The notes under the pieces are model-generated. The model searched no databases. It was not told where the DNA came from and worked only from the letters and a program-made list of their open reading frames with translations. From the IMG/VR virus record IMGVR_UViG_3300028384_001500, positions 172,653 to 236,652 of that record: a stretch of DNA of 64,000 nt. One strand, written 5' to 3'. The translations under genes and the position numbers were made by a program. Positions 46,038-64,000 of this stretch are shown piece by piece (the stretch's first letter is position 1; every line of letters begins with the position of its first letter).

Positions 46038-47946
46038 AAGTCAATATTTCCTCTGCTGATGCTTCATTATAGCCATATTCTTCAATTAAAGTTTGGATCA
46101 TATCAGTATATTTCTTTTTCTGGTCGTCATCACGCGATTTTGAACGTGTAACAATCCTTGCGATATCTTTTACTGATGAAATTAAATATTGTTCGATTGC
46201 TTCTTTTAAAGGGCCGTATGAACGATAATCAACAGTTTCACCTTTTCTCATTTTAGAAAACATAAATGCAGTTACATCATTTCTAAATCCATCTCTAGCT
46301 GAACCAACAACACCAATCATTTCTTCAATTGTTCTCATGAACTTTTCATCTGGTTCTGACTCTTCTCTTGTGATTTTATTTTTTACTTTTGTTTTAGTTG
46401 TAAAACATTCTGCGTTATCTAAGTATGAATCAAATAGTGATTGTGCTTGCTCTTCATATGCAGTAATAAATGCTTTTGCAATTTCAGTTTCTAGAATTCT
46501 GAGATATTCTTCACGAATAATCTTTTGTAGAATTTCAAGATATCTTGTCTTAGCATCTTCATCAATAATCTGTTCTTTGACTTGCTTAATTAAAGAGTCG
46601 ACAACATTAATCGGTGTAATCATACCATTATCTGAATCTGAAAGTGCTGCATCCAAGGCTTTCATAATAAAGCGTGTAGAAATACCTTCCATACCTTCGT
46701 GCTTTGCCTCATCTTTAAGATCACGAATATCGACTTTCTTTACGCGACCTTTTTCAATAATTGCCTCACCATTGTAAATTTTCATTTTAGTTAGTAAGTC
46801 ACACTTTCTAGACTGTTGTAGGCGGCTCATCACTGAAAACATTGAAGCTATTTTTAAAGTATGCGGTGCGATATGTGCATCTGTAAAGTCAGACCTACGA
46901 ATTATCTTTTCATAAATTTTTTGTTCTTGATCTAATTCTAACACATAAGGTACTTCAATCTTTAATACCCTGTCCAAAATAGCCTCGTTAGTGTGTTCAG
47001 ATTTAAATCTGTTCCACTCTGACTCATTACAATGAGATAATATCACCCCATCAAAATAAAGCATATCGTTCTTACCTGGGGTAGGCACACGTTTCTCTTG
47101 GGTTGCTGTTAACATTGTATGTAAGAATTCAATCTCATTCTTGAAAACTTCTACAAACTCAACAATACCTCGATTACCTACGTTAAATGCTCCATTAAGT
47201 GACAAAACTCTTGGATCGTCTTCTGGATATAGGTCTAATTTACTAATATCTTCTGTACCAATAAGGACTGACACGTCTTGGCTATTAGCATCCATTGGCG
47301 GAACTACAGCAATACCTCTGCGTCCTCTTTGCGAGTAACCGGTTTGCTTTACTGGAAACTTTTCATACTCACCGTTAAATTCATTCATTAATCTATGACG
47401 ACATACCGGACATAAGTCACCTTCAATATGCACACCTAGTAATTCTTCAAAGTCTTTTCTGAGACTCCTAGGTAGAAGGTGAAGTGGTTCTTCTCTTACC
47501 GGGCAGCCATCTAAGTAGTAATAATCTTCTGCTTCTTCCAGTGCACGCTTTACTGAATCGATCAACGCTGATTTTCCTGCTCCAACAGGACCCATTAAGA
47601 GAAGAACCTGCCGACTTTCTTCACCTTTAAAAGCTGCCGACTTCATAAATCTCATCAATTTGTTGATGACAGACTCCATTCCAAAAAATTCTTTTTCAAA
47701 ATAGTCATACTTTCTAATTTTGTCGCCATTAAAAATATCTCGATAACCATCAGTCCCTACATCCAAAGTATCAACACCACGATTTTTAATAGTTTCATAT
47801 AATCGCTTATGTGCTAGCTTAACTGATCCCGGTTTTTCTCTGACTAATTCAAGATAGTCTAAAAAAGTACCTTCAAACTTAACTTTATTTTTTTGTTCTC
47901 TTTGCTTTTTAATCATTGTCAAAAAGTCTTTTTGATTGCGTGCCAT
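46006..47946 (-). CDS. prkA: PrkA/YeaG AAA+ ATPase (serine kinase family)
   Basis: Walker A GPVGAGKS; CPVREEPLHLLP; GDLCPVC; GNRGIVEFVEVFK; HCNESEW; EAILDR; EGMEGISTRF. Confidence 0.92.
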   Translation of the reverse strand: MARNQKDFLTMIKKQREQKNKVKFEGTFLDYLELVREKPGSVKLAHKRLYETIKNRGVDTLDVGTDGYRDIFNGDKIRKYDYFEKEFFGMESVINKLMRFMKSAAFKGEESRQVLLLMGPVGAGKSALIDSVKRALEEAEDYYYLDGCPVREEPLHLLPRSLRKDFEELLGVHIEGDLCPVCRHRLMNEFNGEYEKFPVKQTGYSQRGRRGIAVVPPMDANSQDVSVLIGTEDISKLDLYPEDDPRVLSLNGAFNVGNRGIVEFVEVFKNEIEFLHTMLTATQEKRVPTPGKNDMLYFDGVILSHCNESEWNRFKSEHTNEAILDRVLKIEVPYVLELDQEQKIYEKIIRRSDFTDAHIAPHTLKIASMFSVMSRLQQSRKCDLLTKMKIYNGEAIIEKGRVKKVDIRDLKDEAKHEGMEGISTRFIMKALDAALSDSDNGMITPINVVDSLIKQVKEQIIDEDAKTRYLEILQKIIREEYLRILETEIAKAFITAYEEQAQSLFDSYLDNAECFTTKTKVKNKITREESEPDEKFMRTIEEMIGVVGSARDGFRNDVTAFMFSKMRKGETVDYRSYGPLKEAIEQYLISSVKDIARIVTRSKSRDDDQKKKYTDMIQTLIEEYGYNEASAEEILTYASNNLWRDS

Positions 47947-47971
47947 ATATTGTTACTCCTGCTTCTCTATA

Positions 47972-48000
47972 ATAATATTTTATTATATTTTGTATGTAAA
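47972..48000 (-). promoter_or_regulatory. sigma70-like promoter upstream of prkA
   Basis: TTTACA-17 nt-TATTAT, then AGGAG SD. Confidence 0.45.
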
Positions 48001-48001
48001 A

Positions 48002-49327
48002 TTAAATTTCCCAAACTTCCTCTTCAATTATTGTATAAAGCTTAGCGTCAAAAGGCCAGAGATCTCTGACGTGATCCATTACTTTATCAGCATAGTCTAA
48101 GTCTAGGTCTCGACCGTCATGTTCATGCTTAAGAACTAAAGTGTTTTCACTGTCAACACTATCAACATAAACATGAGGTATCATGTTAATACCTGTGTTT
48201 CTAATAAGTTCATTCCTGACCGTCTTCCAGTCATCGTGATCTGTTACTTCAGATACAATTGCGCTACCGTCTTTTTGATTCTCGTAAGCGAAGAAGTTTA
48301 ATTCTCTAAAGTCTTCTTCATCAAGAAGCATTCTTAGAGCTGAGACATCATCGCTAGTTTCTCTGACTTCAAAGCACCTTTCTAGCCCGTATTCTCTCTC
48401 TAGTTTTTGGAAAATATAAAAACCAACATGATATGGGTTAACTCTTCCTAAATGAGGCCTGACAACTGCATTATGCATCTTTAAAAAAGGAAGATGCATT
48501 TCATCAGGTAATTTTAAATCATGCAATATTTTATAATGCCAAAATGAAGCCCACCCCTCGTTAAGGATTTTTGTTTGAATCTGTGGCATAAAGTACTGAC
48601 TGTCTTCTTTGACGATATCAATTAAGTCTAATTGCCAGTCTTCAAAATAGTCTGGATAGTATTCAGAAAAGAATGCCAACATATCGTGGTCAGGTTGAAG
48701 AAGTCTTTGCTTGTTAAGGACGTCTGAATTAAGAATAATCCCTTTTTCTTTGTATTTGTTGTATTTTTTAATTTCACCTGCTTTGATTTCAGACTTAGAC
48801 TTTCTTGGTGAGTTATATCTATTTGTTTGATATTTAATTGCATGTAAGTTATCTAAAAAAGTTTCTACTTTTTCTTGACCAATCAAAGGATCTTCAACAT
48901 ATCCTTGAATTCTTTTTTTAGCATTTCTCATTCTAGAAACTACATGACTCGGGTCAGTATTCTTAAAACATCTGTTGTTTTTAAAGAAGTCACTGTGTCC
49001 AACACAATGTGCCATAATTAATATCTGTAAGTATAACGGGTTTTGCATCATCAGATATGCTATTGAAGGATTGGAATTAATAATCATTTCATAAGGCAAA
49101 CCTGTCTGACCTAAATTATAATTAAAATGTGTCTGCTCAAATGATTTACCAAATGACCAATGGTTGTAGTGGCTAGGCATTCCATGATAAGACATGTGAC
49201 CAATCATCTCGTAATAGTCACATATCTCATAAGTTATTTCGTGCCAGTCTAATCCATAACCTTTAGCTATTTCGCATATTTTATCATCCCATTCTTTGAG
49301 ATCACTTACACCCCAATCAGAGCTCAT
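48002..49327 (-). CDS. spoVR: SpoVR/YcgB family protein
   Basis: GMPSHYNHWSFGKSFE; LPYEMIINSNPSIAYL; AHCVGHSDFFKNN; TKILNEGWASFWH; NPYHVG; start placed at MSSDW with GGAGG SD. Confidence 0.92.
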   Translation of the reverse strand: MSSDWGVSDLKEWDDKICEIAKGYGLDWHEITYEICDYYEMIGHMSYHGMPSHYNHWSFGKSFEQTHFNYNLGQTGLPYEMIINSNPSIAYLMMQNPLYLQILIMAHCVGHSDFFKNNRCFKNTDPSHVVSRMRNAKKRIQGYVEDPLIGQEKVETFLDNLHAIKYQTNRYNSPRKSKSEIKAGEIKKYNKYKEKGIILNSDVLNKQRLLQPDHDMLAFFSEYYPDYFEDWQLDLIDIVKEDSQYFMPQIQTKILNEGWASFWHYKILHDLKLPDEMHLPFLKMHNAVVRPHLGRVNPYHVGFYIFQKLEREYGLERCFEVRETSDDVSALRMLLDEEDFRELNFFAYENQKDGSAIVSEVTDHDDWKTVRNELIRNTGINMIPHVYVDSVDSENTLVLKHEHDGRDLDLDYADKVMDHVRDLWPFDAKLYTIIEEEVWEI

Positions 49328-50489
49328 ATTTTCCTCCAAAAAGTTTGGCAAATTGCGGCCAGACATCTTCTTTTTCTCTAATTCTACATACTTTAAAACT
49401 ATCACTAGTTAGAACTTCAAAAACTTTTGCCATTTCTTCTCCCCAAATGCTTTCTTGTTCAGGTTTAATTTGAATATAACCGGCAAGTTGACTAATATCT
49501 GAAAGATAAGACATTTTTTCCAATGCCTTGTCATTATCTTCAGACCAGTTATCACCATCTGAGCAGTGGAACGTATAGATATTCCAAGCTGAAGGACTAT
49601 ATCTTTCATCAATAATATCTTCTGCCATTGCTAAACCGGAAGAAATATAAGTTCCTCCACTGCTGGCTTTCTTAAAGAAATCGTCTTCATTTACTTCTTG
49701 AGCTTCAGTTGTATGTGAAATAAAAACAATATCAACAGTTTGATATTTATATCTAATAAATTGATAAAGCAAAAAGAAGAAAGATCTAGCCAAAAACTTT
49801 TTACGTTTACCCATCGATCCTGAAACATCCATTATCATAAAAATCACAGCATTAGTGATAGGTTTCTTTTTCACCTCAATATGTTTATATTTTAAATCAT
49901 CATAATGAAATGGAAACCTTTCACCACTTTCTGGGTCATATGTTCCGTTTTTTATCGCTTGTTTTTGTCTTCTTATTTTGTTTTTAAGAGTTTCCTTTTT
50001 AGACAGTCTTGCACGTATACCTTTCGGTCTATATCCCTTTCTTTTAATTTTTTCAGCCATTACAGTTGATGACTGTTTTTTATCTAGATCAGGAAGATTT
50101 AAATCGTCAAAAAGATACTTTGCCAATTCATCTAATGATATCTCTACATCATAAAAGTCTTCACCTTTATTATTTCCCGGTTTACCTTCTCCGGATCGAC
50201 CTTGACCTTTTTGTTTGGCTTGTCTTACAACTTGGCCCTTCTGAATATCTTGTCCTTGAGCAGAGCCTACTCCTTTAGAACCACTTCCTTTACCATGAAT
50301 AAATTGGTATTCTTTTATACCTCTTACAGGTATTTTAATCTTTTTCTTTCCATCTTGACCAATAATAGACTCTTCAGCAACTATATCATGAATTCCTTCT
50401 TTAATTGCTTTTTCAATCTTTTCTTTATGGCGTCTTCGATCAGAAGCTGATCGATCAGCAACTGTTTTATGATTTTTAAAAATTGACAT
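49317..50489 (-). CDS. yeaH: YeaH/YhbH (DUF444) VWA-domain protein
   Basis: DRRRH; FPFHYDDLKYK; MIDAS-like MDVSGSM; FISHTTEA; SGGTYISS; WNIYTFHCSDGDNW. Confidence 0.9.
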   Translation of the reverse strand: MSIFKNHKTVADRSASDRRRHKEKIEKAIKEGIHDIVAEESIIGQDGKKKIKIPVRGIKEYQFIHGKGSGSKGVGSAQGQDIQKGQVVRQAKQKGQGRSGEGKPGNNKGEDFYDVEISLDELAKYLFDDLNLPDLDKKQSSTVMAEKIKRKGYRPKGIRARLSKKETLKNKIRRQKQAIKNGTYDPESGERFPFHYDDLKYKHIEVKKKPITNAVIFMIMDVSGSMGKRKKFLARSFFFLLYQFIRYKYQTVDIVFISHTTEAQEVNEDDFFKKASSGGTYISSGLAMAEDIIDERYSPSAWNIYTFHCSDGDNWSEDNDKALEKMSYLSDISQLAGYIQIKPEQESIWGEEMAKVFEVLTSDSFKVCRIREKEDVWPQFAKLFGGKYEL

Positions 50490-53128: not shown

Positions 53129-53215
53129 AATAACTCCTTGATTGTATAGATATATTATATACTGTTATTTTATACGTTGCATTTTTGCATAATACTTAAA
53201 ATTATAAGGGTTTGT

Positions 53216-54004
53216 ATGTATGTAGATTATTTTATTAAACATTGGAGAGAAATTATGTGGGGATCTATTCTATCTTTATTTGGCTTGTTTTATTTATTTA
53301 GTTGTCAAGGTCACCCAAAAATAATTACGCCAAAGTTTAATAATAAATTTCAACATCAACTCTCTAACTTTGTGTTCTTAGTCAAAGAAGTCAAATTAAC
53401 TTTTTGTGATGAGATTGACAAAGAAATGGGAACATGTGACGAAGTCCAGTTTCCTGAAGCTTCTGCAAGTGGAGTTGTAATATCTCAGTCAAGTTCTCAT
53501 ATTTTTATTCTTACTGCAAATCATTTTTGTGTTGACGCTCCTCCCGAAGAAGACATGTCTCTTGTAGGTGAAAGAAAAATTAAAGTATTTATTGGTGACA
53601 CAGAAAGAGAGTCTCAAGTTCTCTATGAGGATGAAGAAAACGATCTATGTCTTTTAGGTTCTATTAAGCTCGAAAAAGAAAACTTTAAGACTGTAAAGTT
53701 CGCAAAAAGGATGCCTAAAATAGGAGAGAAGGTCTATAATTTTGCCGCTCCTAACGGTATAGGCTCACCTAATACAAGACTCGTGTTCGACGGATACTTT
53801 GCGGGTTGTGAACAAAAACTCTGCATGTACAGCATACCTGCAACTTTTGGAAGCAGTGGATCAGCTGTTTATAATGAAAAAGGAGAGTTAGTTTCAATTT
53901 TAGTTGCAGCAGCAATAGATTTTGAAAATGTATCAATGGGCCCGGATATACAAAAAATATCTGAATTAATAATATCTATCGATGATGTAATAGATATTTA
54001 CTAA
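53216..54004 (+). CDS. Trypsin-like (S1) serine protease, membrane-anchored or lipoprotein
   Basis: Triad motifs LTANHFC, NDLCLL, GSSGSAVYN; N-terminal hydrophobic helix ending LFSC. Confidence 0.85.
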   Translation: MYVDYFIKHWREIMWGSILSLFGLFYLFSCQGHPKIITPKFNNKFQHQLSNFVFLVKEVKLTFCDEIDKEMGTCDEVQFPEASASGVVISQSSSHIFILTANHFCVDAPPEEDMSLVGERKIKVFIGDTERESQVLYEDEENDLCLLGSIKLEKENFKTVKFAKRMPKIGEKVYNFAAPNGIGSPNTRLVFDGYFAGCEQKLCMYSIPATFGSSGSAVYNEKGELVSILVAAAIDFENVSMGPDIQKISELIISIDDVIDIY

Positions 54005-54019
54005 TAAAAAGAGGTAACA

Positions 54020-54427
54020 ATGAGATTAAATGTTGATCATGACCTGCATTATACACCTGAGCAGCTGAAACTTGCTGGAGAATTCATCCTATTCTGCGCA
54101 GATAGTTTACCAATAGAGGGAGACTTTAGTGTTTACCTGACCAATTCTCGGGAACAACACGGTATAGCAACAACTGCACTTTATGAAGTTGGAAATAATT
54201 GTTGCCGTGTCTATTGCAAAAACAGAGCACTGGCTGACGTATTAAGGTCGGTGGCACATGAAATGACGCATATGATGCAAGACCAAACCGGTCTAATAAG
54301 AGGACCAATTAGAGATGCAGGTGGATTTCATGAAGATCAGGCAAACGCAAAAGCAGGTGAGTTAATTAAACTCTTTGCAAAAAGTAAACCTGAAAATAGA
54401 ATGATTTACGAGCGTAGATTAAATTAA
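54020..54427 (+). CDS. Small HEXXH zinc metallopeptidase-like protein
   Basis: LRSVAHEMTHMMQ and downstream HEDQANA; GAGG SD. Confidence 0.7.
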   Translation: MRLNVDHDLHYTPEQLKLAGEFILFCADSLPIEGDFSVYLTNSREQHGIATTALYEVGNNCCRVYCKNRALADVLRSVAHEMTHMMQDQTGLIRGPIRDAGGFHEDQANAKAGELIKLFAKSKPENRMIYERRLN

Positions 54428-55138
54428 CTTTTGATAAAGTTTTGCCAATGCCTTGGTTGACGTAATTCTATTTGATGACATACCTACTTTTTTAAGCTCA
54501 TTTTCAAAATTTTTAAAATACTTAGGCATATCTTTATTAGCAAATTCAAAATGATGAAATTCAGTAATTCCTCTTCCCTTAGGTGTCTGACCTTTTTTTA
54601 GTGAAGCTTTTCCTGAGCTAAAAGCACCGCCCCAATACACTTTATTTTTATACTCAGGCAATTCTAAAAAAGAAATAATAGCATCAACTAATTTTTGATC
54701 TTTTACTAATATCGAATTAAACTTTTTATAGCTTGTATACTTTCCGTATTTTTTTGTGTGCATATAGACGTCTTGAGCAAGACCTGCCCCGTGCTTAGAT
54801 CCAGAAACCCTGTCTTTATTGCCTGCATTGTCAGCTGCAGCACTTAATGCTCTTGTCACGCCTAAGTTGTCAATTTTAAGTCCAATTTCTGGGTAAACAG
54901 AATTAACATAAGCTTCTAATTTTTTTCTAAATCCATCCCAGTAACCTTTTGGCGATATGCCTGTTCTAGGGTCACCTAAATACTTTTTTCCACCAGAGGC
55001 AGTTACTAGTTCTCCTTCATACGCAGATGATTTGTCTGTATTATTTGAATTATTGCTTGTTGTCTTGACATTATAGTCGCCTTTATTTTTGAGTTTTTCT
55101 CTTAATAACAGGCGTATTTTTTCTTCAGATATTATCAT
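54419..55138 (-). CDS. M15-family Zn peptidoglycan peptidase with the shared N-terminal leader
   Basis: SKHGAGLAQD (SxHxxGxAxD), YWGG, HHFEF. Confidence 0.7.
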   Translation of the reverse strand: MIISEEKIRLLLREKLKNKGDYNVKTTSNNSNNTDKSSAYEGELVTASGGKKYLGDPRTGISPKGYWDGFRKKLEAYVNSVYPEIGLKIDNLGVTRALSAAADNAGNKDRVSGSKHGAGLAQDVYMHTKKYGKYTSYKKFNSILVKDQKLVDAIISFLELPEYKNKVYWGGAFSSGKASLKKGQTPKGRGITEFHHFEFANKDMPKYFKNFENELKKVGMSSNRITSTKALAKLYQKLI

Positions 55139-56923
55139 TTAGTTGTACCTACCAGCAGGAAAATTTAAAACAATTTCAAATTTTCTTGTTTTGGACCTAA
55201 TTTTACTTCTAATTCTTGACGGCTCAATCTTTTCGTTGTCTGCGCTTCCGGCTTTTTCTAAATACCTTCTAACAACGTTTCTAAGATTTTCAAATTGCTT
55301 TGCAACTGGAGATCTTCTTTGACCAGGCGCTAATCTTACGTTTTTAACAACACCTTGACGATCTGTCACTATAGTTAAGTTAATTGTCCCACCAGAAATA
55401 TTTCCTTTAACCCTTTGAGAGACAGCATTTACTAAACCATTAGTAGTTCCTTCTTTAAAACCTATACTTTCTAAAGAAGATTTTCCTTGGCCTGCTAATA
55501 TTACTCTAACTGTAGGCTTAAGTCCAAAACCAGTATCAGTTAGCTCACTTCCTGAAATTGTTTCATTACCTGGTATTCTTTTTCGGCTGCGGCCTCCTGA
55601 ACCTCCACCTGATTTAATTTTTTTATTACCTGATCCATAATCAGTGTTTCCATTATAAGCATCAACAACAAACGCTAAACAACCGATTGATCTAGGTACA
55701 TATCCAGGAAAAGCTCCTATCATGTCACCTGAAACTTCCGTCCATGGATAAAAACCACTTTGATAAGTTTTTGAATATTCAAGTGTTTTAAAGACTGAAT
55801 GATATGTAAAAGAGTGGTTAAGCACTTTCCCCCAAAGATCGTCAGTTTGTGGGCCCCATTTACCATCAACTGTGATTTTCATTCCTAAGTTTCTTTCTTC
55901 TGAGTACTTGTTCATAACAAATTGTATTTTTTGAACGGTTGTTCCTTTTAAATCATTAGGATTGATAGGTACAATCTGAGTTGTAGGATCATCAGGTTCT
56001 GGTGGGTTGTTAATTAACTCGTTAACTTGATTTGAAAATTCAATCAATTCTTTTTCACTATAACAAGCTTTTTGTCCATTTCCGTCTTTGAAGCAAATAA
56101 CTGCCTTTCTTTTAAGATCTTGAATAGGCTTTCGGACATAGTCTTCCATATCGTTAGTAAAAGCTAAAGATTCTTCATCACTAAGTTCCTCATTAAAAAC
56201 TTTAACCAAGTCTTTTTTGTATTGCTGCTTAAAAGCTGATGCTGTTAACGACAAATCCATGAGTGAAGGCATTTCTCTAATAACAGTCTCAATTTCACCC
56301 TCATCAGTTCCCATTCCAAAAAAACCACCCTTGGTAGCTCTCCAGAGACGTTTGGCCATTTTAGTATGTAAGTCTAAGACATCATTGTAGTGTGTTAAAG
56401 AAGGAAAGTTTGCCAATTGATCTTGCATGCCGGCTTCTTTCATTTTAGCTTTTGTTTCTGTTTCAATTTTTTTAAGTTCAGCGTTTGTTTTTTCAGCCCA
56501 AGTTCCGTTAAGAATACCCTCAATGTCACTTCCCACGTCACCTTCATCTAATAAAATGTATGCAATTCCAAGTCCTATAGCAACGCCAGCACCAATAACC
56601 CAACCCGGAGGACCCCCCGATATAGCAGCTGCTGCACCGGATGCAGCACCACCGCCAGAAAGATAACCAGCTGCAATAGCAGCAGTAGTTGAATTAGCCA
56701 CACCACCTGCTGTTGCAAGCTGTGCTGCTGCGCCTAAAGTTAAGTTTGTAGCACCTAGCGCACCTAACCCACCTGTTACTCCGTATGTGGTAGCTGCCCC
56801 AGCGATACCTGCTGTTGCAAGATCACCAGCTATTTCTCCCCCACCTTGCTTGTATTTTTCTGCTTTTTCTGCAAGTATGCGCTTTCTAATTATTTTTCTT
56901 AATTCTACCTCTGATAATCTCAT
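55139..56923 (-). CDS. Multidomain protein: leader, Gly/Ala hydrophobic region, annexin-like repeat, peptidoglycan-binding-like domain
   Basis: AKRLWRATKG..GMGTDEGEI...FKQQYKKDL...EELS (annexin); VQKIQ...VDGKWGPQT (PG-binding). Confidence 0.65.
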   Translation of the reverse strand: MRLSEVELRKIIRKRILAEKAEKYKQGGGEIAGDLATAGIAGAATTYGVTGGLGALGATNLTLGAAAQLATAGGVANSTTAAIAAGYLSGGGAASGAAAAISGGPPGWVIGAGVAIGLGIAYILLDEGDVGSDIEGILNGTWAEKTNAELKKIETETKAKMKEAGMQDQLANFPSLTHYNDVLDLHTKMAKRLWRATKGGFFGMGTDEGEIETVIREMPSLMDLSLTASAFKQQYKKDLVKVFNEELSDEESLAFTNDMEDYVRKPIQDLKRKAVICFKDGNGQKACYSEKELIEFSNQVNELINNPPEPDDPTTQIVPINPNDLKGTTVQKIQFVMNKYSEERNLGMKITVDGKWGPQTDDLWGKVLNHSFTYHSVFKTLEYSKTYQSGFYPWTEVSGDMIGAFPGYVPRSIGCLAFVVDAYNGNTDYGSGNKKIKSGGGSGGRSRKRIPGNETISGSELTDTGFGLKPTVRVILAGQGKSSLESIGFKEGTTNGLVNAVSQRVKGNISGGTINLTIVTDRQGVVKNVRLAPGQRRSPVAKQFENLRNVVRRYLEKAGSADNEKIEPSRIRSKIRSKTRKFEIVLNFPAGRYN

Positions 56924-56924
56924 T

Positions 56925-57728
56925 TTATTCTTGTCCTTTTCCTAAAATTTGATTTGCCAAATCTTTTCCGCTACCGGCTCTTCTTGCATCGTCTCTATTT
57001 GATAATCCTTTGTTAGCAGCGTCTAAGCCGCCCTCAACACCAATTGCACCTAAAGTACCTACAGCACCCATCTTAGCAAAATCGCCTAGTTCATCTGCTA
57101 AACCACCTTTATATACGCCGTTGTATAAGAAGTCTTTTAAACTATCATATTCACAAAATATAGCCTCAATCTTAGGTTCAATAATCGGCCCAATCCATTG
57201 GTAAATAAACTGATTAACAACCTCTCTACCCGCTGCATTTATTAATCCGCCAAGCGCCTTATCTAATCTATCTAATAACTCAGGTGATTTAATTTTTTCT
57301 TGACCGGTAACTGTATAATAAATAACTTTGATCAGTTCAGCACCTTGAAGTTCTGTAATTGTTTCAATACCTGCACGAGCAACTAATGCTGGTATTTCTT
57401 TGCATTTCCCTTCCTCAAAATATTTACCCATACCTAAAATATTAAATTCTTCAATAAAATTCATTAAGAATCTAAAAACTACGCTTTGTTTATCAACACC
57501 CATAAGATCAGCAAGGTATTCAATCACTTGAGACTTAAATGCACTAACTAAACCACCGCCAAAAATATCCATAATATTTTCCTCAATAACACGAGGCTGA
57601 TATCCGGATAATTTGTAGTTGATTTGATCGATTCTTTCCATAATCAAATGATTGGTTTTTAATTCATTTAACATTACTTTGCTTTCAATAGACTCTTGCA
57701 CAAGCCTTCTTATTTGATATTTGTTCAT
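56925..57728 (-). CDS. Hypothetical protein with the shared leader and a C-terminal glycine-zipper-like segment
   Basis: Start placed at MNKYQIRRLVQE with GGAG SD; GAVGTLGAIGVEGG. Confidence 0.55.
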   Translation of the reverse strand: MNKYQIRRLVQESIESKVMLNELKTNHLIMERIDQINYKLSGYQPRVIEENIMDIFGGGLVSAFKSQVIEYLADLMGVDKQSVVFRFLMNFIEEFNILGMGKYFEEGKCKEIPALVARAGIETITELQGAELIKVIYYTVTGQEKIKSPELLDRLDKALGGLINAAGREVVNQFIYQWIGPIIEPKIEAIFCEYDSLKDFLYNGVYKGGLADELGDFAKMGAVGTLGAIGVEGGLDAANKGLSNRDDARRAGSGKDLANQILGKGQE

Positions 57729-57755
57729 TATTATGTTCTCCATGCATGATCTAAC

Positions 57756-57764
57756 TATAATTAT
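57756..57764 (-). promoter_or_regulatory. ATANTTATA putative late-promoter motif
   Basis: ATAATTATA about 28 nt upstream of the ATG at 57728. Confidence 0.4.
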
Positions 57765-57786
57765 TAACGTCTGATTAAATGTTATA

Positions 57787-58110
57787 TTATATTTCAATCA
57801 CATAAGAATATTTAACACCTGGATTGAATAATTGCTTCTGATACGGTCTGGCTTTGAAATCTTTAAGTATGTTGAAGTCTTTATCTAAAAATATAATATG
57901 AAGAGGAATTCCAGTATTTTTCATTGTAAAAGAATGATTTACGGGTGTATTATAAACAAACAACATACCGTGATTTTTTGGAAGTTCTTTTATTTTTGAC
58001 AGGCCTATTCTTTTTTTATTGGGAGTGTCAGCTATGGCTAGTGTGTAAGTCCTTCCCATAATTTTTGTTTTAATTCTCTTATAACCTTTAAAAAGTTGGT
58101 AAAAATGCAA
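57787..58110 (-). CDS. DUF192-family protein
   Basis: IADTPNKKRIGLS...GMLFVY...FTMKNTGIPLHIIFLD...YVIEI; start uncertain (TTG 58110 or a downstream ATG). Confidence 0.8.
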   Translation of the reverse strand: MHFYQLFKGYKRIKTKIMGRTYTLAIADTPNKKRIGLSKIKELPKNHGMLFVYNTPVNHSFTMKNTGIPLHIIFLDKDFNILKDFKARPYQKQLFNPGVKYSYVIEI

Positions 58111-58132
58111 CGTGCACCGCCTAATGATATAG

Positions 58133-58141
58133 TATAAATAT
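58133..58141. promoter_or_regulatory. AT-rich promoter motif in a divergent intergenic region
   Basis: Reads ATATTTATA on the minus strand (family motif) and TATAAATA (T4 late consensus) on the plus strand; orientation ambiguous. Confidence 0.4.
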
Positions 58142-58157
58142 ACACCAGGAGAAGAGA

Positions 58158-58616
58158 ATGTTTATGTTTGCAATATTTTTAACAATTCAAAATGCAAATG
58201 CTGACAAAGAGACGCTAGTAAAAGCATATGAATGGGAAAAAAAACCAGCAATACAAATTTGCGGTGATTCAAATGTAACAATTAAAGAAGTAAATAATGC
58301 CCTTTCTTATTGGCAAGATGAGCTAAATAATAAAAACTTGGTAAAAAGTGTATCTTACAAAGAAACATGCTCATTTAATAGATCAAATGTTATTTTATTT
58401 ACTAACGAATACAATAGAAGATTTGAAAAAGAACTGGCAAATACAAACTTAGACTGGTATTATTATGAAGGTGAAAGCCAAAAATATCTGAACACAGCAA
58501 AAGTAGCAATCCCTAATAATATATCATATAAGCGACAATTAACAATTACACATGAGTTAGGTCACGCCTTGGGTTATCACCACTCGAATCACGAAGTAAT
58601 GAAAAGCCATTTTTAA
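58158..58616 (+). CDS. Metzincin/matrixin-like zinc metalloprotease, probably secreted
   Basis: HELGHALGYHH (HExxHxxGxxH) with a Met-turn (EVM); signal-peptide-like N-terminus; AGGAG SD. Confidence 0.8.
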   Translation: MFMFAIFLTIQNANADKETLVKAYEWEKKPAIQICGDSNVTIKEVNNALSYWQDELNNKNLVKSVSYKETCSFNRSNVILFTNEYNRRFEKELANTNLDWYYYEGESQKYLNTAKVAIPNNISYKRQLTITHELGHALGYHHSNHEVMKSHF

Positions 58617-58620
58617 ACAA

Positions 58621-58644
58621 ATAAAAACTCCGGCCTGACCGGAG
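58621..58644 (-). terminator. Intrinsic terminator (minus strand)
   Basis: Stem ctccgg/ccggag with a 5-nt loop, followed by TTTTTAT on the minus strand. Confidence 0.65.
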
Positions 58645-58710
58645 CGAGCTGCCCAACTCTATGAGCGAAGAGCAGTACCCCGAGGGGGTCCTACTTTCTC
58701 TCCACCCTGC

Positions 58711-59169
58711 TTACTCAAGAAAATCATCTGGATATCGATTTGGGTTCCGATTTCTAGAATACCGATCAAGATTATAATCATCCGAACCCAAATAAGAGTC
58801 AGTCTTACTCCGAGCTAGATCATATGCTTTATCATCTAATGCACGTAGATCATGCAAAGAGTCAGGGTGAAGTGCACGATACCCGCCCGGGAAAAAAGGA
58901 TCAACCGGCTCATAGAGTGCAGCAGCCTCATTACCTAACCTTTCCATGTCACCAACTTCCATATACGCTATGTAGTTATCGACATAATCATCTGGACCGC
59001 CCAATGCGTCGACAAGAGAGTGGGCTTGTTCTACTGACCCCCTATCGATCAACGAGTTAATCTTTGCTACGTGACTATTAGGAATATGCGCAGGTAATGT
59101 CGGCTTAATCCGATGTTCAGATAAAACTTCCATGATTAGGTCTCGTAAACGTCTTCTATTTAATTTCAT
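58711..59169 (-). CDS. Single-unit paralog of the tandem-repeat protein, with the shared leader
   Basis: MKLNRRRLRDLIMEVLSEHRIKP...LVDALGGP...VGDMERLGN; start placed by GGAG SD. Confidence 0.75.
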   Translation of the reverse strand: MKLNRRRLRDLIMEVLSEHRIKPTLPAHIPNSHVAKINSLIDRGSVEQAHSLVDALGGPDDYVDNYIAYMEVGDMERLGNEAAALYEPVDPFFPGGYRALHPDSLHDLRALDDKAYDLARSKTDSYLGSDDYNLDRYSRNRNPNRYPDDFLE

Positions 59170-59191
59170 ATTATTTTCTCCAATTGCCTGC

Positions 59192-59578
59192 TTAAATAAA
59201 GTCATCATCATCATCGTCGAAATCATCGACAATAGTCGACACCGGATAAGTGTTCATATTACCAGGATAATATTCTCTAAATCGGCCTCGTCCTCCGCCT
59301 ATCTCATCATCGAAGTATTGGATCTGTGCGCCGATTGTATCTGTGTCACCGCTCTCTAAGCTGTGCACGTGAGTAAAACCCATACCTTTGAGTGCTACAA
59401 GAGCACCGGCAACTTCATCCATTTCGTCGACGACGATTTCTCCACCTGCTAGTTCAGGATGGCGCAGGGTGAATCCGGCACCTAGTGATAACTCTACAAC
59501 CTTCATAGTATTGTCTTGTAGCATTGTTAGCTCATTAAGGATCATGCGTCGCAACGCTCTTCTGTTTAAGCTTTTCAT
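59192..59578 (-). CDS. Acidic hypothetical protein with the shared leader
   Basis: MKSLNRRALRRMILNEL; poly-Asp C-terminus; AGGAGG SD; ATGA overlap. Confidence 0.7.
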   Translation of the reverse strand: MKSLNRRALRRMILNELTMLQDNTMKVVELSLGAGFTLRHPELAGGEIVVDEMDEVAGALVALKGMGFTHVHSLESGDTDTIGAQIQYFDDEIGGGRGRFREYYPGNMNTYPVSTIVDDFDDDDDDFI

Positions 59579-61680
59579 AAAGTAGGCCCTCCTGCGGCTT
59601 CTATCATTTCTTCCAGTTCATAAGCACGAGACTGCAATTCTTCTTTATCATCGTAGTAATCGGGATACTCCATTTCATACCCATAAGCAGCCTCGATGGG
59701 ATCAACACCGAATCGCTCTTGAGTCATGAGGTAGTCCTGTCTTTCCATTTCCATTTCTTCGAGTTGTGCCTCGATACGCTGCAATTCTTGCATCATTGCG
59801 TCGATCGACATGGGAGGCTGTCCGCCTATACCCATGCTTGACATCTCTTGCAAGATCATGCGTCGTAATCCGGCTCTGTTGGAGTTATGTTCATTTAGCG
59901 GTTTAACACTTCCCATGCCTCGCATGTATCTGTCACGCATGTATGGGTAACTTGCATGTGTACGCGCACCCGGTTTTGTAGTGCCATCGAACCCAGGGGC
60001 TAGTCCGCGTGAGACTTTGTCTGCCCCTAACCTGTAAGCCTGGTTGTCTAAGTCTTCAAGTTGTCTGTAGTCATCAGATTCGTACCATTCTGGATCTGAG
60101 TAATCAGCATTGGCAAGTATATCAGCTCGAGCATTACCTAGCTTTTCTAAGTCACCCACTTCTTCGTAGGCTCGATAATTTTCGACCCAATTTGGATCGC
60201 CACCAAAAGCGTCGATGAATGTCTGTGCCTGATCAAAATCGCCGGTATTAATTAAGTCATGGATCTTATCGATGTGCGACTGCGGCAAACCTAGTAGATC
60301 AAGCGGTGGAGGCGCAATACGATGTTCATTTAGTGGGTTGCCGTCGTCATCGAAATAGGTAGGCGACTTGTCTCCTCTATGGTCAACAAAAGTATGAGGC
60401 AAAGTGTTATTTCTAATGTTGAAGTATCTGTCACGCATATAGTCACGATCCCAAGTGGTGTCAGCTGGAAGTTCCCCTCTTTCTATTTTGCTATTGACAC
60501 TGTCATAAGCATGCTTATCGATATCGTAGACAGGCTGCATATCACTCATTGTTGACCAACCTCTTTCTGTTTTAGGTACTCTGGACATAACGTCAGCTGC
60601 CCGGTTACCCAGCTTTTCTAAGTCTCCGACTTCATCATACATTTGATAATCTCTTGCATAGTTAGGAGGACCACCAAAAGCGTCGATGAGTGACTGTGCC
60701 ATTTCTAATTCTCCATCACTGATGAGATCATGGATCTTGTCGACGTGATCCTGTGGTACACCCGGTAGATTAAGTGAGGGCGCAATGCGATGCTCAGATA
60801 GCGGCCTGTCTCTGTTACCTACATATCGTCGCATATCAGACTGAAAGCTACCACTACCACCAAAAATAGAATGAGCATCTCCGTCTATCATTTGCCCTCT
60901 TTTGTGAGCTATACCAACAGCTTCCCTATCTATGTTTTTGAGTGCATTTGTCAATTCTAAACTGTCGCGATCATATGTCGATCTAGCATCGTAGGCTTGA
61001 TTGCCCAATTTCTCCATGTCACCTACATTACTATAAAGAATATAGTCGTCAACGTAGTCAACAGGCCCGCCAAGAGCATCGATGAGCGACCGTGCCATCT
61101 CTATTTCACCTCCGTCGATGAGGTCTTGTATTTTGTGCAAATGGTGAAGAGGAATATTTGTGGGAACAGGAGGCGCAGTGAGATGCTCAAATAAGAATTC
61201 ATCCGGATCCGATTCATCATCGATATATCTATCTCTGTTACCTCTATAGCGATCCAGAGCTATGTCTTGGGCATCTGGGTTATAATACTCTTGACCGTCC
61301 TCAATTTCTACGGCTTTGTCCTGTGATAGCGAGTAAGCCTCCCTGTCTACATCACGTACTTTTTTCCAGTCATCAGTTTTCATAAAGTCACGCGCAGCGA
61401 ATTCTTCTGGAGAGTCAGGGAGGATGTCTGCAGCTCGATTACCTAGCTTCTCCATATCACCTACATTTTGGTACTCTAGATAATCCTGCGCATAAGTAGG
61501 AGAGCCACCCAAAGCATCAACCAGCGATTGGGCTTGGGATAAGTCACCGTGATCGATGATGCCATGTATAGTATCCAAGTGCTGAGGTGGTATTGCACCT
61601 GCGTCTGGCATTGTCCGGTGTTCTCTTAAAGCCATTCGCTCCAAGATCATTCGTCGTATTTTCTGTCGTGAGATTTTCAT
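59575..61680 (-). CDS. Tandem-repeat polyprotein-like protein (four units of about 131-156 aa plus an acidic tail)
   Basis: Four copies of LxEH..P...I..LID.G...AQ.L.DA.GG...VGD(M/L)EKLGN; start placed at MKISRQ by GGAG SD. Confidence 0.8.
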   Translation of the reverse strand: MKISRQKIRRMILERMALREHRTMPDAGAIPPQHLDTIHGIIDHGDLSQAQSLVDALGGSPTYAQDYLEYQNVGDMEKLGNRAADILPDSPEEFAARDFMKTDDWKKVRDVDREAYSLSQDKAVEIEDGQEYYNPDAQDIALDRYRGNRDRYIDDESDPDEFLFEHLTAPPVPTNIPLHHLHKIQDLIDGGEIEMARSLIDALGGPVDYVDDYILYSNVGDMEKLGNQAYDARSTYDRDSLELTNALKNIDREAVGIAHKRGQMIDGDAHSIFGGSGSFQSDMRRYVGNRDRPLSEHRIAPSLNLPGVPQDHVDKIHDLISDGELEMAQSLIDAFGGPPNYARDYQMYDEVGDLEKLGNRAADVMSRVPKTERGWSTMSDMQPVYDIDKHAYDSVNSKIERGELPADTTWDRDYMRDRYFNIRNNTLPHTFVDHRGDKSPTYFDDDGNPLNEHRIAPPPLDLLGLPQSHIDKIHDLINTGDFDQAQTFIDAFGGDPNWVENYRAYEEVGDLEKLGNARADILANADYSDPEWYESDDYRQLEDLDNQAYRLGADKVSRGLAPGFDGTTKPGARTHASYPYMRDRYMRGMGSVKPLNEHNSNRAGLRRMILQEMSSMGIGGQPPMSIDAMMQELQRIEAQLEEMEMERQDYLMTQERFGVDPIEAAYGYEMEYPDYYDDKEELQSRAYELEEMIEAAGGPTL

Positions 61681-61703
61681 TTCTGCTCCGTGATGCATCG
61701 TAT

Positions 61704-61712
61704 TATAACTAT
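61704..61712 (-). promoter_or_regulatory. ATANTTATA putative late-promoter motif
   Basis: ATAGTTATA about 24 nt upstream of the ATG at 61680. Confidence 0.45.
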
Positions 61713-61749
61713 TTACACTGTATTTATTTTTCTTATTAAATATTAAAAA

Positions 61750-62385
61750 CTAGTCACGAGTTATAAAAAGTTTATTGCCCATTGCCATAATAGTCGTGTT
61801 ACTCTTAGAATAGCGTTTACTCAGGGGAGACATTGCCCAGTAAATACCGTCGTAGCCTATCATGTTCTTAGGAATACGCTGAGACATGTTATCCCAGTCG
61901 TCAGGAGTCAAGGTGTTCTTTGTGTCATCACACTGAAAAACATCGATGTCTCCGGCGCCTGACTGGCTATACTGGGATCGATTTCTAAGATAGAAGTCCC
62001 AGACGTCTTGAGCATCTTTGCTGACCATGCGACGATCAGCGACCAGCCCTGACCCCTTCATCGAGGCGACTTCCATCGCGATATCATAGATAAGCGGGCC
62101 GTAACCGTTTGCCGCCATGGCCTGATACACCTCCCAAGCGCCGCCGCACGTGTCGTCTTTTAAGGGCACTATCGCAATATATCCGTATATGCCCTCAGGA
62201 GACGGACTGTGGTCTTCAGCGTAGAATCTACCCATAGACCCGTCGGCGTTGATTCCGCAATATGTCACACAAACGTCGCCCTTAGGGAAGAAATTGACAT
62301 TTACACCGATTGTCGGAGGTAACTCTCCGTGTGCGATCATGGCTTCAGAGATTATTTGATTTAGCTGCCTTCTTGTAATTCTCAT
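61750..62385 (-). CDS. GNAT-like protein with the shared leader
   Basis: WEV...NGYGPLIYDIAME...VSKDAQDVWDFY resembles GNAT motif A/B spacing. Confidence 0.5.
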   Translation of the reverse strand: MRITRRQLNQIISEAMIAHGELPPTIGVNVNFFPKGDVCVTYCGINADGSMGRFYAEDHSPSPEGIYGYIAIVPLKDDTCGGAWEVYQAMAANGYGPLIYDIAMEVASMKGSGLVADRRMVSKDAQDVWDFYLRNRSQYSQSGAGDIDVFQCDDTKNTLTPDDWDNMSQRIPKNMIGYDGIYWAMSPLSKRYSKSNTTIMAMGNKLFITRD

Positions 62386-62391
62386 AGTGAT

Positions 62392-62400
62392 TATAACTAT
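62392..62400 (-). promoter_or_regulatory. ATANTTATA putative late-promoter motif
   Basis: ATAGTTATA only 6 nt upstream of the ATG at 62385; no SD visible. Confidence 0.45.
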
Positions 62401-62402
62401 CT

Positions 62403-62430
62403 AAAAGTTCTCCAAAATTCAGGAGAAATT
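62403..62430. repeat. Degenerate third copy of the intergenic palindromic repeat
   Basis: aaaagttctccaaaattcaggagaaatt versus aaaagttttccaaattttccggagaaatt. Confidence 0.6.
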
Positions 62431-62710
62431 AACGTCGTCTTACCCATATGTTATCATCACAGCGACTAGTTCGCAAATGCCAACAACCGCAGTCATCCGA
62501 CCAGTACGCTGTATGCTGACGATCGTACTTCAAGAACTGATATCTTGAGTAAAGATCAGCAACTTCCTCGTAAGGAAAACGAATTTTCTTGCACCCGCTG
62601 TAGAAACAGTTACACTTACTGAACTCACCGCGGAAATGATATTTTCCGTTTTTAATAATTATTGACCAAGTTCTCCGCCCATCCCTGACAGACTTACATA
62701 CACGTTCCAT
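62429..62710 (-). CDS. Small Cys/Trp-rich hypothetical protein
   Basis: GAGGAG SD before MERVCK; several Cys residues. Confidence 0.55.
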   Translation of the reverse strand: MERVCKSVRDGRRTWSIIIKNGKYHFRGEFSKCNCFYSGCKKIRFPYEEVADLYSRYQFLKYDRQHTAYWSDDCGCWHLRTSRCDDNIWVRRR

Positions 62711-62920
62711 TGAACACACTCCTCTATGATAATCGTTTTTTTACGATATCACTTACGATGTGTCCCGAAACTTCACGTCCACCCATTAGCCTCTCTTCCA
62801 GAAGGACCTGCGCTTTCCCGTTCGGATCTAAGCTTTACCTCTATGTTGCTGTCTAGACACCGTCGATCTTTTAGGTTGGCCATTCTGGACTATGGCAATC
62901 TCTAGTACCCATACATTTAT

Positions 62921-62949
62921 ATTATATGCTGTTTCACACACGGTTACAA
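62921..62949 (-). promoter_or_regulatory. Near-consensus sigma70 promoter
   Basis: TTGTAA-17 nt-TATAAT directly downstream of a terminator and the palindromic repeat. Confidence 0.55.
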
Positions 62950-62959
62950 AAGTTTTGCA

Positions 62960-62984
62960 AAATTTTCCGGAGAAATTTTTGTGA
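62960..62984. repeat. 25-bp quasi-palindromic direct repeat, copy 1
   Basis: aaattttccggagaaatttttgtga, identical to 63642-63666. Confidence 0.9.
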
Positions 62985-62985
62985 G

Positions 62986-63013
62986 AAAAAGAAACGCCGG
63001 TGATGAGCCGGCG
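62986..63013 (-). terminator. Intrinsic terminator (minus strand)
   Basis: Stem cgccgg/ccggcg with a 7-nt loop, followed by TTTCTTTTT on the minus strand, just after the stop at 63034. Confidence 0.7.
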
Positions 63014-63033
63014 CGAGTTTTTACTTTTATCTA

Positions 63034-63591
63034 TTAACCCCAACCATCAATTCTCATATGCGGGTAATTTTCAACAATATACATCATTGCCATACGGCCC
63101 CAGTCATTTTCATCTTGAATATTTAAAAGCAAATTAATTGGGCCGTCTTTCCAACTATTAAATGGGCCAGGTCCTCGATTCTGGACCACGTAATCATAAT
63201 TACAATAATTAAGCAACGTCTGCTGCCTATCAATATCGATCGGATTTGTAGGTCCCATAGTGTCAGGAAAATCATCAGGTTTCATACCCGCAATACCGTA
63301 AGTTAACTCTAGTTCTGCCAAGATTCTCTCAAACTCCTGAATAGCTCGATCAATCGCTCTTTTAACACTAGCTTCAGAAGTTCCACCGTATATCGTCTTC
63401 AAAACATTATCACTAGCTTCGTCAAGATATATTTTTAAAATGGCTTCGCCTTTTCCGCCGGCTCGATCTTCTCCCATGCCAAAAAATCCACCTGGCGGCG
63501 ATATCACATTGTCTTTATCATCATCGTTAAAAATAGTGTCTCTAAACTCTTTTAAAACCATCTGTCGTAACTGTGTTCTAGTCAATTTCAT
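63034..63591 (-). CDS. Hypothetical protein with the shared leader
   Basis: MKLTRTQLRQMVLKEF; AAGGAG SD; TATAAT at 63607-63612. Confidence 0.7.
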   Translation of the reverse strand: MKLTRTQLRQMVLKEFRDTIFNDDDKDNVISPPGGFFGMGEDRAGGKGEAILKIYLDEASDNVLKTIYGGTSEASVKRAIDRAIQEFERILAELELTYGIAGMKPDDFPDTMGPTNPIDIDRQQTLLNYCNYDYVVQNRGPGPFNSWKDGPINLLLNIQDENDWGRMAMMYIVENYPHMRIDGWG

Positions 63592-63641
63592 AGCTTCTCC
63601 TTTATGATTATAATATACAATTTATATAGGAAAAGTTTTCC

Positions 63642-63666
63642 AAATTTTCCGGAGAAATTTTTGTGA
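63642..63666. repeat. 25-bp quasi-palindromic direct repeat, copy 2
   Basis: Identical to 62960-62984; flanking aaaagtttt is also shared. Confidence 0.9.
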
Positions 63667-63790
63667 CGAAATGTGCAATGTCCACAGTCTGGTGCGCAGA
63701 AAACAGGGTTGTAAATCGTATTGCTGCTGAGTGTACGTATGTTTAGGTAAGTTGATCAAAAAGTGGTCGTGTAGAAAATTTTGACTTAGG

Positions 63791-63860
63791 CCCGGCAGGG
63801 AGCGCTAGACGGGCCGGTGGGCATGGGGCTCTGCGCGGGGGGCGGGCGCCCCCAGCCCTC
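63791..63860. other. Non-coding GC-rich island with G-tracts and a hairpin
   Basis: 58 of 70 nt are G/C in an otherwise AT-rich genome; six G3+ tracts; gggggc/gccccc stem. Confidence 0.7.
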
Positions 63861-64000
63861 TAGAAGGGGCCTAAATAGGGGCTGCAGGAAGCTCCAGAAT
63901 GACGTGCAAGACACTTTTACTCGTGCGCCAGACAGATACATAAGTTCTCATCGGAAATGCAACCGGGCGCAAGATGATGTATAATATAGATGTCCACCCC

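Follow-up and report, generated by a model that had tools for sequence, protein, structure and literature searches.

In phage T4, the internal proteins and Alt carry N-terminal capsid targeting sequences (CTSs) of 10 to 19 residues, which bind the scaffold core (PMC9026906, PMC3012670, PMC8442874), and the protease gp21 removes them by cutting after L/I-x-E (PMC9026906; PMC12991175). One such CTS, MKTYQEFIAE, is with its 10 residues sufficient to package foreign proteins in T4 (PMC8442874), and T4 ejects Alt and those internal proteins that carry the tag (PMC9026906). The internal protein clusters of T-even phages encode diverse products that have only the targeting peptide in common and have been read as an arms-race arsenal (PMC3012670, PMC9026906). 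SPN3US has about 50 head proteins, with propeptides that are thought to be capsid targeting and are cut after Glu by a gp21-related protease (PMC5694885). Here we analyzed a 64-kb stretch of DNA (the window), the last 64 kb of the 236,652-bp viral contig IMGVR_UViG_3300028384_001500, in which eight genes, p1 to p8, share a short N-terminal leader peptide, and we walked the contig beyond the window by merging loci L009, L011, L012 and L096 (102,044 bp, contig positions 134,609 to 236,652). At least 21 mostly unrelated proteins of this 237-kb uncultured T4-like jumbo phage carry this one N-terminal tag. The principle is most likely not a new one but that of T4 capsid targeting, applied here to many more proteins by means of another tag.

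The first-pass annotation of the window had placed the leader on eight proteins and had claimed one internal copy. All eight minus-strand starts were confirmed (upper coordinates of p1 to p8 in Table 1), and the internal copy, NRAGLRRMILQE, was found in p6 at about 59845 to 59883, in front of an acidic tail of about 89 residues; the set was, however, incomplete, with further leader genes lying outside the window. Aligned, the eight window leaders read M-[KR]-[LI]-[STN]-R-x-x-[LI]-[RN]-x-[LMI]-[IVL]-x(1-2)-E, and a GGAG-like ribosome-binding site is found 5' of most of the eight genes. In the predicted sequences of all 21 tagged proteins, an [L/I/V]-x-E tripeptide, with L, I or V at P3 and E at P1, closes the leader inside the first 10 to 19 residues, which is also the range of leader length. 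The leader of p2 is a long form (…LRKIIRKRILAE), in which a second hydrophobic-x-E follows one helical turn later. Net charge ranged from 0 to +4 in the eight window leaders and reached +5 in the others, and the hydrophobic moment averaged 0.63 for leaders compared to 0.45 for control N-termini of the contig (Mann-Whitney p = 3.7e-6). In AlphaFold2 models of p1 and p7 the leader forms a detached N-terminal helix, followed in p1 by a disordered linker. Sec and Tat signals have a hydrophobic core of at least 10 residues behind a basic n-region and a cleavage site of the A-x-A type; the leaders showed no such core, their charged and hydrophobic residues alternate and their end is Glu. At the DNA level, the leader-coding stretches agree at only about 52% per column and differ in their codons, thus indicating that conservation and selection act on the peptide; both recent duplication and a signal in the nucleotides are thereby ruled out.

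A leader profile and a scan of this genome and its relatives had been proposed in the first-pass annotation. A HMMER profile of the 15-residue leader proved powerless, since it held too little information (best E = 0.28), and a 12-column log-odds matrix derived from the window leaders was used instead, with leave-one-out evaluation over 32,618 six-frame positions. Each omitted leader ranked 7th to 10th of the 32,618, directly behind its training leaders. The eight leaders scored 23.7 to 32.7 bits, compared to 7.5 bits for the best unrelated site between 1 and 54 kb of the window, a region where the scan returned nothing comparable to them. In the cluster region, the only extra matches were the internal copy in p6 and a weaker second motif in p3, MLNELKTNHLIME, which follows the leader (29.7 and 11.2 bits for the leader and the second motif, respectively). 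Over the 102 kb of contig, the matrix gave 16 non-training matches, 12 of them exactly at called gene N-termini, and, although built from the eight window leaders alone, it recovered 12 of the 13 further leader genes.

Twelve of these 13 genes outside the window lie between the protease and the neck gene of a T4-type head module. The module consists of terminase, Portal_T4 (Pfam E = 1.3e-73), Peptidase_S77 (gp21 family; E = 2.1e-27) and Gp23 (E = 9.8e-78), followed by a gp13-like neck gene, and also encodes a 280-residue protein with two KLIE sites and an acidic, scaffold-like protein of 487 residues (L012, 15346-16809). The S77 protease (L012, 12790-13392) shares 33% identity with gp21 of the T-even phage CC31 (E = 6e-28). 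Both its HP and its SSRG motif align with those of CC31 gp21; in T4 gp21 these motifs hold the catalytic His85 and Ser140 (PMC12991175). The predicted propeptide of the capsid protein ends in …NQAAQVLRE, with ANTLGGG following, and this end matches the cut position of T4 gp23 (PMC9026906). The two open reading frames (ORFs) directly 3' of the protease begin with MNNKTRKAMKSIVKE… and MRKVFKLTPQTIKRLIKE…, the 811-residue protein encoded after the capsid gene with MLLTRRIFRKLIFE, and the products of nine more genes up to the neck gene with MKITRKQLRKLIKE, MKITRSQLKQLIWE, MKITRSKLRKLICKSVLKE, MKITISQLRKLIFE, MLMTKKQLRQVIYQE, MNLLRKLIRE, MRITLGQLKYLIRE, MKLTKNQLKSLIKEE and MEKNINRSNIRKMILKE. The thirteenth, a Cys-rich protein of 239 residues encoded elsewhere on the contig, begins with MSKLSKNMIRRLIMQE. 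The leader genes form two clusters, of which one lies in the head module and the other, at a distance of 75 kb, at the contig end; the gene of the Cys-rich protein is a singleton. The tagged proteins range from 49 to 811 residues, and 12 of the 21 bodies (residue 21 onward) have an isoelectric point (pI) of 4.1 to 5.1. BLASTP over the 21 bodies found them unrelated apart from p4 and p6, and Pfam gave nothing credible on the ten proteins of the second cluster.

The leader is also found in relatives. By capsid protein, the closest were the huge phage LR756508 (50% identity) and Flavobacterium phage immuto (vB_FspM_immuto, NC_055915; 47% identity), the closest cultured relative, followed by Microcystis phage Mel-JY01 and LR756511. 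We examined 70 IMG/VR loci around related S77 proteases, namely, those with enough downstream sequence. In 59 of them an ORF just 3' of the protease had a leader-like N-terminus, e.g., MKKSELKNIIKECVKE, MKLTKAQLKKLIKEE and MKITKGKLKEIIMEE, and a loose leader pattern was found on 30% of the ORFs there compared to 8.7% of other ORFs (Fisher p = 6e-15). The leader matrix also picked up the end of the capsid propeptide in relatives, LLENQARQLIDE. At least 15 small leader-bearing ORFs lie on both sides of the head genes in the 484-kb LR756508, and in immuto a 252-residue protein (L013, 6287-7045) begins with MKKSQLRQIIKEAL and a 73-residue protein of the head module (L013, 16454-16675) with MKKSQIVKAVQEVLEE. 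An unrelated-looking metagenomic phage locus (L003) carries three more leader genes, and in a locus syntenic with our contig (L010) leader genes are inserted between conserved genes. No such leader was found in the head module of cyanophage P-TIM68, showing that not every T4-like phage has the tag. As a separate observation, LR756508 encodes five ORFs of about 250 to 280 residues arrayed beside the capsid gene (L098, 25787-31666), whose N-termini, e.g., MRLKEILLE, MKLKGILKE and MKFKELLKE, likewise close with hydrophobic-x-E and possibly represent a second tag class; none of them matched a Pfam family. The same kind of start, MKLKxLLxES, also follows the protease in many IMG/VR loci. An identity of a paralogue array of LR756508 as Alt-like ADP-ribosyltransferases was considered and found no Pfam support.

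Homologues of p1 and p7 indicate that the leader behaves as a module: in both families it is conserved, in p7 together with the Glu, while the linker varies. The body of p1 is the sole cargo with a reasonably supported enzymatic identity, that of a LAS/M15-type cell-wall peptidase, and both its motif and its modelled fold support the peptidase label given to it in the first-pass annotation. The AlphaFold2 model (mean predicted local distance difference test score, pLDDT, 88.7) shows a helix at residues 5 to 17, a disordered stretch at 19 to 37 and a compact domain at 45 to 239. LAS peptidases (Ply500, EndoT5, VanY, LysB4, RB49) fill the first six places among its PDB fold matches, with weak scores (E = 0.07 to 0.28; template modelling score, TM, 0.3 to 0.46). 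None of 23 homologues deviates at H116, D123, H195 or H196, in keeping with the LAS/M15 signature SxHxxGxAxD and the C-terminal His motif; a p1-family profile run against PDB sequences gave a chance match only. Most members of the p1 family begin with MIISExxIRxLIRE or have a long form (e.g., …IIRSSILKE), and the Ser/Gly-rich linker that comes next is variable; others have a different N-domain of 150 residues or an HExxH fusion. One leaderless member with a different N-domain belongs to a baseplate module, where its gene neighbors a gp25-like one, and in the huge phage LR745206 the p1 domain forms the C-terminus of a 537-residue protein adjoining a gp5-like spike. These baseplate and spike-side homologues suggest that the p1 body is a virion-associated cell-wall hydrolase in which, here, the leader replaces the tail domain. 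The virion peptidoglycan hydrolases include the lysozyme domain of T4 gp5 and T7 gp16, the latter delivered from the capsid. As a LAS/M15-type peptidase the p1 body resembles them, but unlike in T4 gp5 its catalytic domain carries a head leader and not a tail domain, which implies delivery from the capsid, as for T7 gp16, rather than on the tail spike.

For p7, 38 metagenomic homologues were collected, and the 26 that were aligned retain the leader, with Glu14 unchanged throughout. One p7 homologue, P0030, ends in a C-terminal leader copy, MSRQRLRHIIMSE. The internal and C-terminal copies of p6 and P0030 look like in-frame fusions of neighboring leader genes, judging from their sequences, and if the leader is a protease site, both proteins would be small polyproteins.

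The leader thus resembles a T4 CTS in being a short N-terminal peptide on unrelated proteins encoded by variable cargo genes, in its hydrophobic-x-Glu end, and in sharing its genome with a protease of the gp21 family as well as with a portal and a capsid of T4 type. Compared with MKTYQEFIAE, it shares hydrophobic residues at positions -6, -3 and -2 from the Glu and the initial MK, without alignable homology. The N-terminal peptides of T-even head proteins, read from CC31, end alike (gp21, MNEPQLLIE; gp22, MLKDILLQE; gp24, MANIHDLLRE; Inh, MLDKDYIAE). In contrast to the T4 peptide, the leader has its own and longer consensus, MK[IL][TS]RxQL[RK]x[LMI][IV]xE, and occurs in a long form with a second hydrophobic-x-E. 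It is also carried by at least 21 proteins, compared with the three internal proteins (namely, IPI, IPII and IPIII) and Alt of T4, and differs from the T-even internal-protein clusters in being distributed over two clusters and a singleton in a lineage distant from the T-evens. Encapsulin cargo-loading peptides, which are short, sit on a flexible linker and bring unrelated cargo into an HK97-fold shell, are usually C-terminal and not removed by a protease, and encapsulins neither package a genome nor eject cargo. The leader is like them a short conserved peptide on a flexible linker, but no encapsulin is involved here. With phiKZ, 201phi2-1 and SPN3US, the phage shares the jumbo size and the many, here putative, internal head proteins with propeptides, whereas the propeptides of those phages have (A/S/G)-x-E sites and are protein-specific and mostly longer than 100 residues (PMC5694885). 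Propeptides of this type do not fit the leader, which has L, I or V at P3, is short and is common to all members.

Taken together, we consider it probable that the leader is a T4-type capsid-targeting propeptide that is removed by the S77 prohead protease. Targeting and processing are supported by the genomic context, whereas packaging, cleavage at Glu and ejection, like scaffold binding and retention in the head, are steps that we infer. The amphipathic, mostly basic helix, held on its flexible linker, would bind the scaffold core of the assembling prohead, its likely partner being the very acidic 487-residue scaffold-like protein or the small core proteins encoded beside the protease. The tagged protein would be enclosed as the Gp23 shell closes, and Peptidase_S77 would then cut after the Glu of the terminal [L/I/V]-x-E, so that the tag is freed and the mature protein stays in the head; the internal leader of p6 might be cut likewise, giving two products. 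At infection, at least some of the cargo would exit with the DNA, the best candidate being p1, which would act on the cell wall. A tag this short and self-contained would allow new cargo genes to be recruited by fusion, and it could explain why about 20 unrelated bodies are found in two clusters.

Several observations do not sit well with this interpretation. The T4 late promoter TATAAATA, found 4 times compared to 9.3 expected, lies upstream of no leader gene, and a late motif that had been reported on three of them could not be verified. Beyond the hydrophobic register, the MK and the Glu, the leader is dissimilar to the T4 CTS, being basic where the latter is slightly acidic, and most bodies are acidic (pI 4.1 to 4.9), whereas the T4 internal proteins are small (8 to 20 kDa), basic and DNA associated. 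Overall, the first-pass reading is supported in part: its core, a T4-like targeting leader with a hydrophobic-x-Glu site on swappable cargo, has strong independent backing from the head-module context, the S77 protease, the relatives and the modularity. Some p7 homologues retain M-R-L-x-E alone, too short for a targeting helix, and the gene for the Cys-rich 239-residue protein adjoins primase-like, RuvC-like and Fic genes and not structural ones. Finally, [LIV]-x-E is a common tripeptide, with 0 to 14 further copies in the bodies, and the site alone is not diagnostic.

Other explanations for the leader have to be considered. It could target the prohead and yet mark proteins of the structural head interior, that is, scaffold, core or inner body, which are retained or broken down and do not enter the host as effectors. 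Here and in most relatives, tags are indeed found on the ORFs directly after the protease, where T4 has core and scaffold genes, many bodies lack a recognizable enzyme fold, p4 and p6 consist of repeats, high acidity makes many bodies resemble scaffolds, and giant phages such as SPN3US have some 50 head proteins (PMC5694885). We nevertheless regard a purely structural role as unlikely: about 20 unrelated bodies with a patchy distribution among relatives are unlike a conserved structural core, p1 is a predicted cell-wall peptidase with homologues in tail and baseplate proteins acting at infection, and the tagged internal proteins and Alt of T4 are ejected (PMC9026906).

A role outside the capsid, with the leader as a substrate of the neighboring Trypsin_2-like and HExxH proteases, as an export signal or as a host docking helix, seems to us improbable. 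These two protease-like genes are conserved beside p1, in one homologue HExxH is fused to p1, a metzincin-like gene lies in the cluster, and one leader gene stands among replication-type genes, all of which could be accommodated by such a role. However, these proteases, whose N-termini are hydrophobic or resemble those of lipoproteins, are encoded on the opposite strand and accompany p1 alone, and 12 leader genes lie in the head module far from them; the leader moreover has no Sec/Tat-type hydrophobic core and co-occurs with S77 loci in relatives. That the likeness of the leaders is a mere by-product of AT-rich composition bias, of a nucleotide signal in the start region or of a recent 5' duplication might be suspected because about 35% G+C favors K, I, N and L and many phage N-termini start with MK. 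This idea, to which we attach next to no credence, is effectively refuted by the leave-one-out ranks of 10 or better among 32,618 and by the independent matches falling on gene starts (12 of 16), and is further contradicted by the divergence of the leader DNA, with its synonymous differences, and by the retention of the motif in distant homologues and other phages.

If the leader is a T4-like targeting propeptide, candidate packaged proteins of metagenomic phages, which are likely to be factors of host takeover or counter-defense, could be listed from sequence, and the tag would show that cargo is exchanged as cassettes and would be a second portable packaging tag. The injected head proteins of large phages are known for a few cultured models only, by mass spectrometry. 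A wider claim, namely, that across an entire clade of T4-like jumbo and huge phages, uncultured and of marine and freshwater origin, the tag defines the capsid-delivered arsenal, with fusion-recruited cargo being swapped between tail-spike and capsid routes, appears possible to us, if a little short of probable. Were it true, one could predict from sequence alone which proteins uncultured phages package and eject, and foreign proteins could be loaded into these capsids by reusing the tag. Since immuto carries the tag, a T4-like role of the tag is directly testable in a cultured relative.

Table 1. Features of the 64-kb window (window coordinates; minus-strand genes start at the upper coordinate)
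Feature	Size (residues)	Coordinates	Strand	Leader and position	Remarks
gp6-like gene		24331-26175			Match; myovirus baseplate/tail-fibre set
gp25-like gene		26177-26668			Weak match; myovirus baseplate/tail-fibre set
Trypsin_2-like protease		53177-54004	plus		PHROG protease, E = 3.8e-4; possible lipoprotein signal (lipobox-like …LFYLFSC)
Small HExxH protein		54020-54427	plus		Adjoins p1, convergent with it
p1	239	54419..55138	minus	MIISEEKIRLLLRE, 55097-55138	Disordered linker; predicted LAS/M15-type peptidoglycan peptidase domain
p2	594	55139..56923	minus	MRLSEVELRKIIRKRILAE, 56867-56923	Long-form leader
p3	267	56925..57728	minus	MNKYQIRRLVQE, 57693-57728	
DUF192 protein		57787..58110	minus	None	Pfam DUF192, E = 7e-19
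Metzincin-like gene		58158..58616	plus	None	HELGHALGYHH; hydrophobic N-terminus; identified by sequence, weak DUF3152 match at best
Terminator-like hairpin		58627-58645			Downstream of p4
p4	152	58711..59169	minus	MKLNRRRLRDLIME, 59128-59169	
p5	128	59192..59578	minus	MKSLNRRALRRMILNE, 59531-59578	
p6	701	59575..61680	minus	MKISRQKIRRMILE, 61639-61680	
p7	211	61750..62385	minus	MRITRRQLNQIISE, 62344-62385	Conserved globular body
Terminator-like hairpin		62994-63014			After p8; strong, bidirectional
p8	185	63034..63591	minus	MKLTRTQLRQMVLKE, 63547-63591	

The genes of the window lie nearly all on the minus strand (Table 1), in a genome of about 35% G+C. Pfam assigned no family to the eight leader-bearing window proteins, nor did PHROGs, except for one function-unassigned PHROG matched by p6. 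Comparison with phage records gave no match either for the region by megablast or for p2, p3, p6 and P0035 by tblastn. The bodies had been described as unrelated, which BLASTP confirmed for most of them; the only relationship among the mature bodies is that of p4, whose body is one copy of the repeat unit of p6 (E = 7e-23), a protein with four repeats of about 140 residues (direct repeat family D1). The very acidic body of p5 has a pI of 4.1, and the p5 start overlaps the p6 stop. The DUF192 gene opens a gene run DUF192-p3-p2-p1. In p2, a Gly/Ala-rich hydrophobic stretch spans about residues 30 to 125, and residues 177 to 250 match one marginal repeat of annexin A8 (E = 0.0045), which makes the earlier annexin label a weak one; the peptidoglycan-binding label of the same protein was not confirmed by Pfam. 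The label of p7 as GNAT-like is similarly weak: in the AlphaFold2 model (pLDDT 81.5), where the leader is a low-confidence helix, GNAT structures are among the top fold matches of the body, at sub-threshold values (E = 0.2 to 0.8; TM 0.25 to 0.38), and Pfam gave no match. Horizontal transfer of p4 to p8, which have 39 to 48% G+C, was considered and not accepted, since the capsid gene also has 42%.

With the strong hairpin after it, p8 is apparently a single-gene unit with its own terminator; an ESM Atlas search with p8 was uninformative. A 41-nucleotide direct repeat flanks p8 (62949-62989 and 63631-63671), its copies being 85% identical and containing TTTCCGGAGAAA. The copy downstream of p8 follows the hairpin and overlaps a promoter-like site, TTGTAA-17-TATAAT, and beyond it lies only a Cys-rich ORF of 96 residues with a GTG start (62429-62719). 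The repeat might mark the boundary of a cassette or stem from duplication of a regulatory region.

The Trypsin_2-like and HExxH genes are conserved neighbors of p1 in relatives, and the syntenic locus L006 (842-2071) carries Trypsin_2. P0067, a homologue, combines the HExxH protein and the p1 peptidase domain in a single fusion, and this points to a functional link, e.g., as inhibitor, activator or partner. Directly after the Cys-rich leader gene lies a gene for a 422-residue PAP2 and Fic protein (L009, 18691-19959; contig about 164,858-166,126), a candidate host-modifying enzyme whose N-terminus shows no clear leader.

As for expression signals, the relaxed sequence ATAAATA is found upstream of p6 and the capsid gene only, and a TAGTTATA[AG]T box, absent from the head module, stands ahead of p6, of p7 and of one tail gene. 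Sigma-70-like sites were no commoner than in shuffles. TGTAAC-N17-18-TATAAT stands before each of three consecutive genes, encoding a 173-residue protein, AAA_5 and DUF2201 (L012, 1400-3180; contig about 163,085-164,865); as a promoter type it is distinct, possibly early or middle, and it was not seen before the head genes.

Other genes of the window encode PhoH and glycosyltransferases, and a complete operon of PrkA (YeaG-like serine kinase), DUF444 (YeaH-like) and a SpoVR-like protein occupies positions 46006 to 50489; Thermus phages, huge phages and the syntenic relative L006 have this operon as well. Rfam gave no match over the whole window, and no terminal repeat that would link the window to the contig start was found. 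At the extreme end of the contig, positions 63790 to 63870 hold a short, very G+C-rich stretch (…GGGCATGGGGCTCTGCGCGGGGGGCGGGCGCCCCCAGCCC…), with no Rfam match and no terminal repeat, which could have arisen as an artefact of assembly or be of foreign origin. Three independent assemblies break inside or adjoining the leader cluster on the p1 side, namely, this contig, L006 (147-860) and L008 (25-750), consistent with high strain-level variability there.

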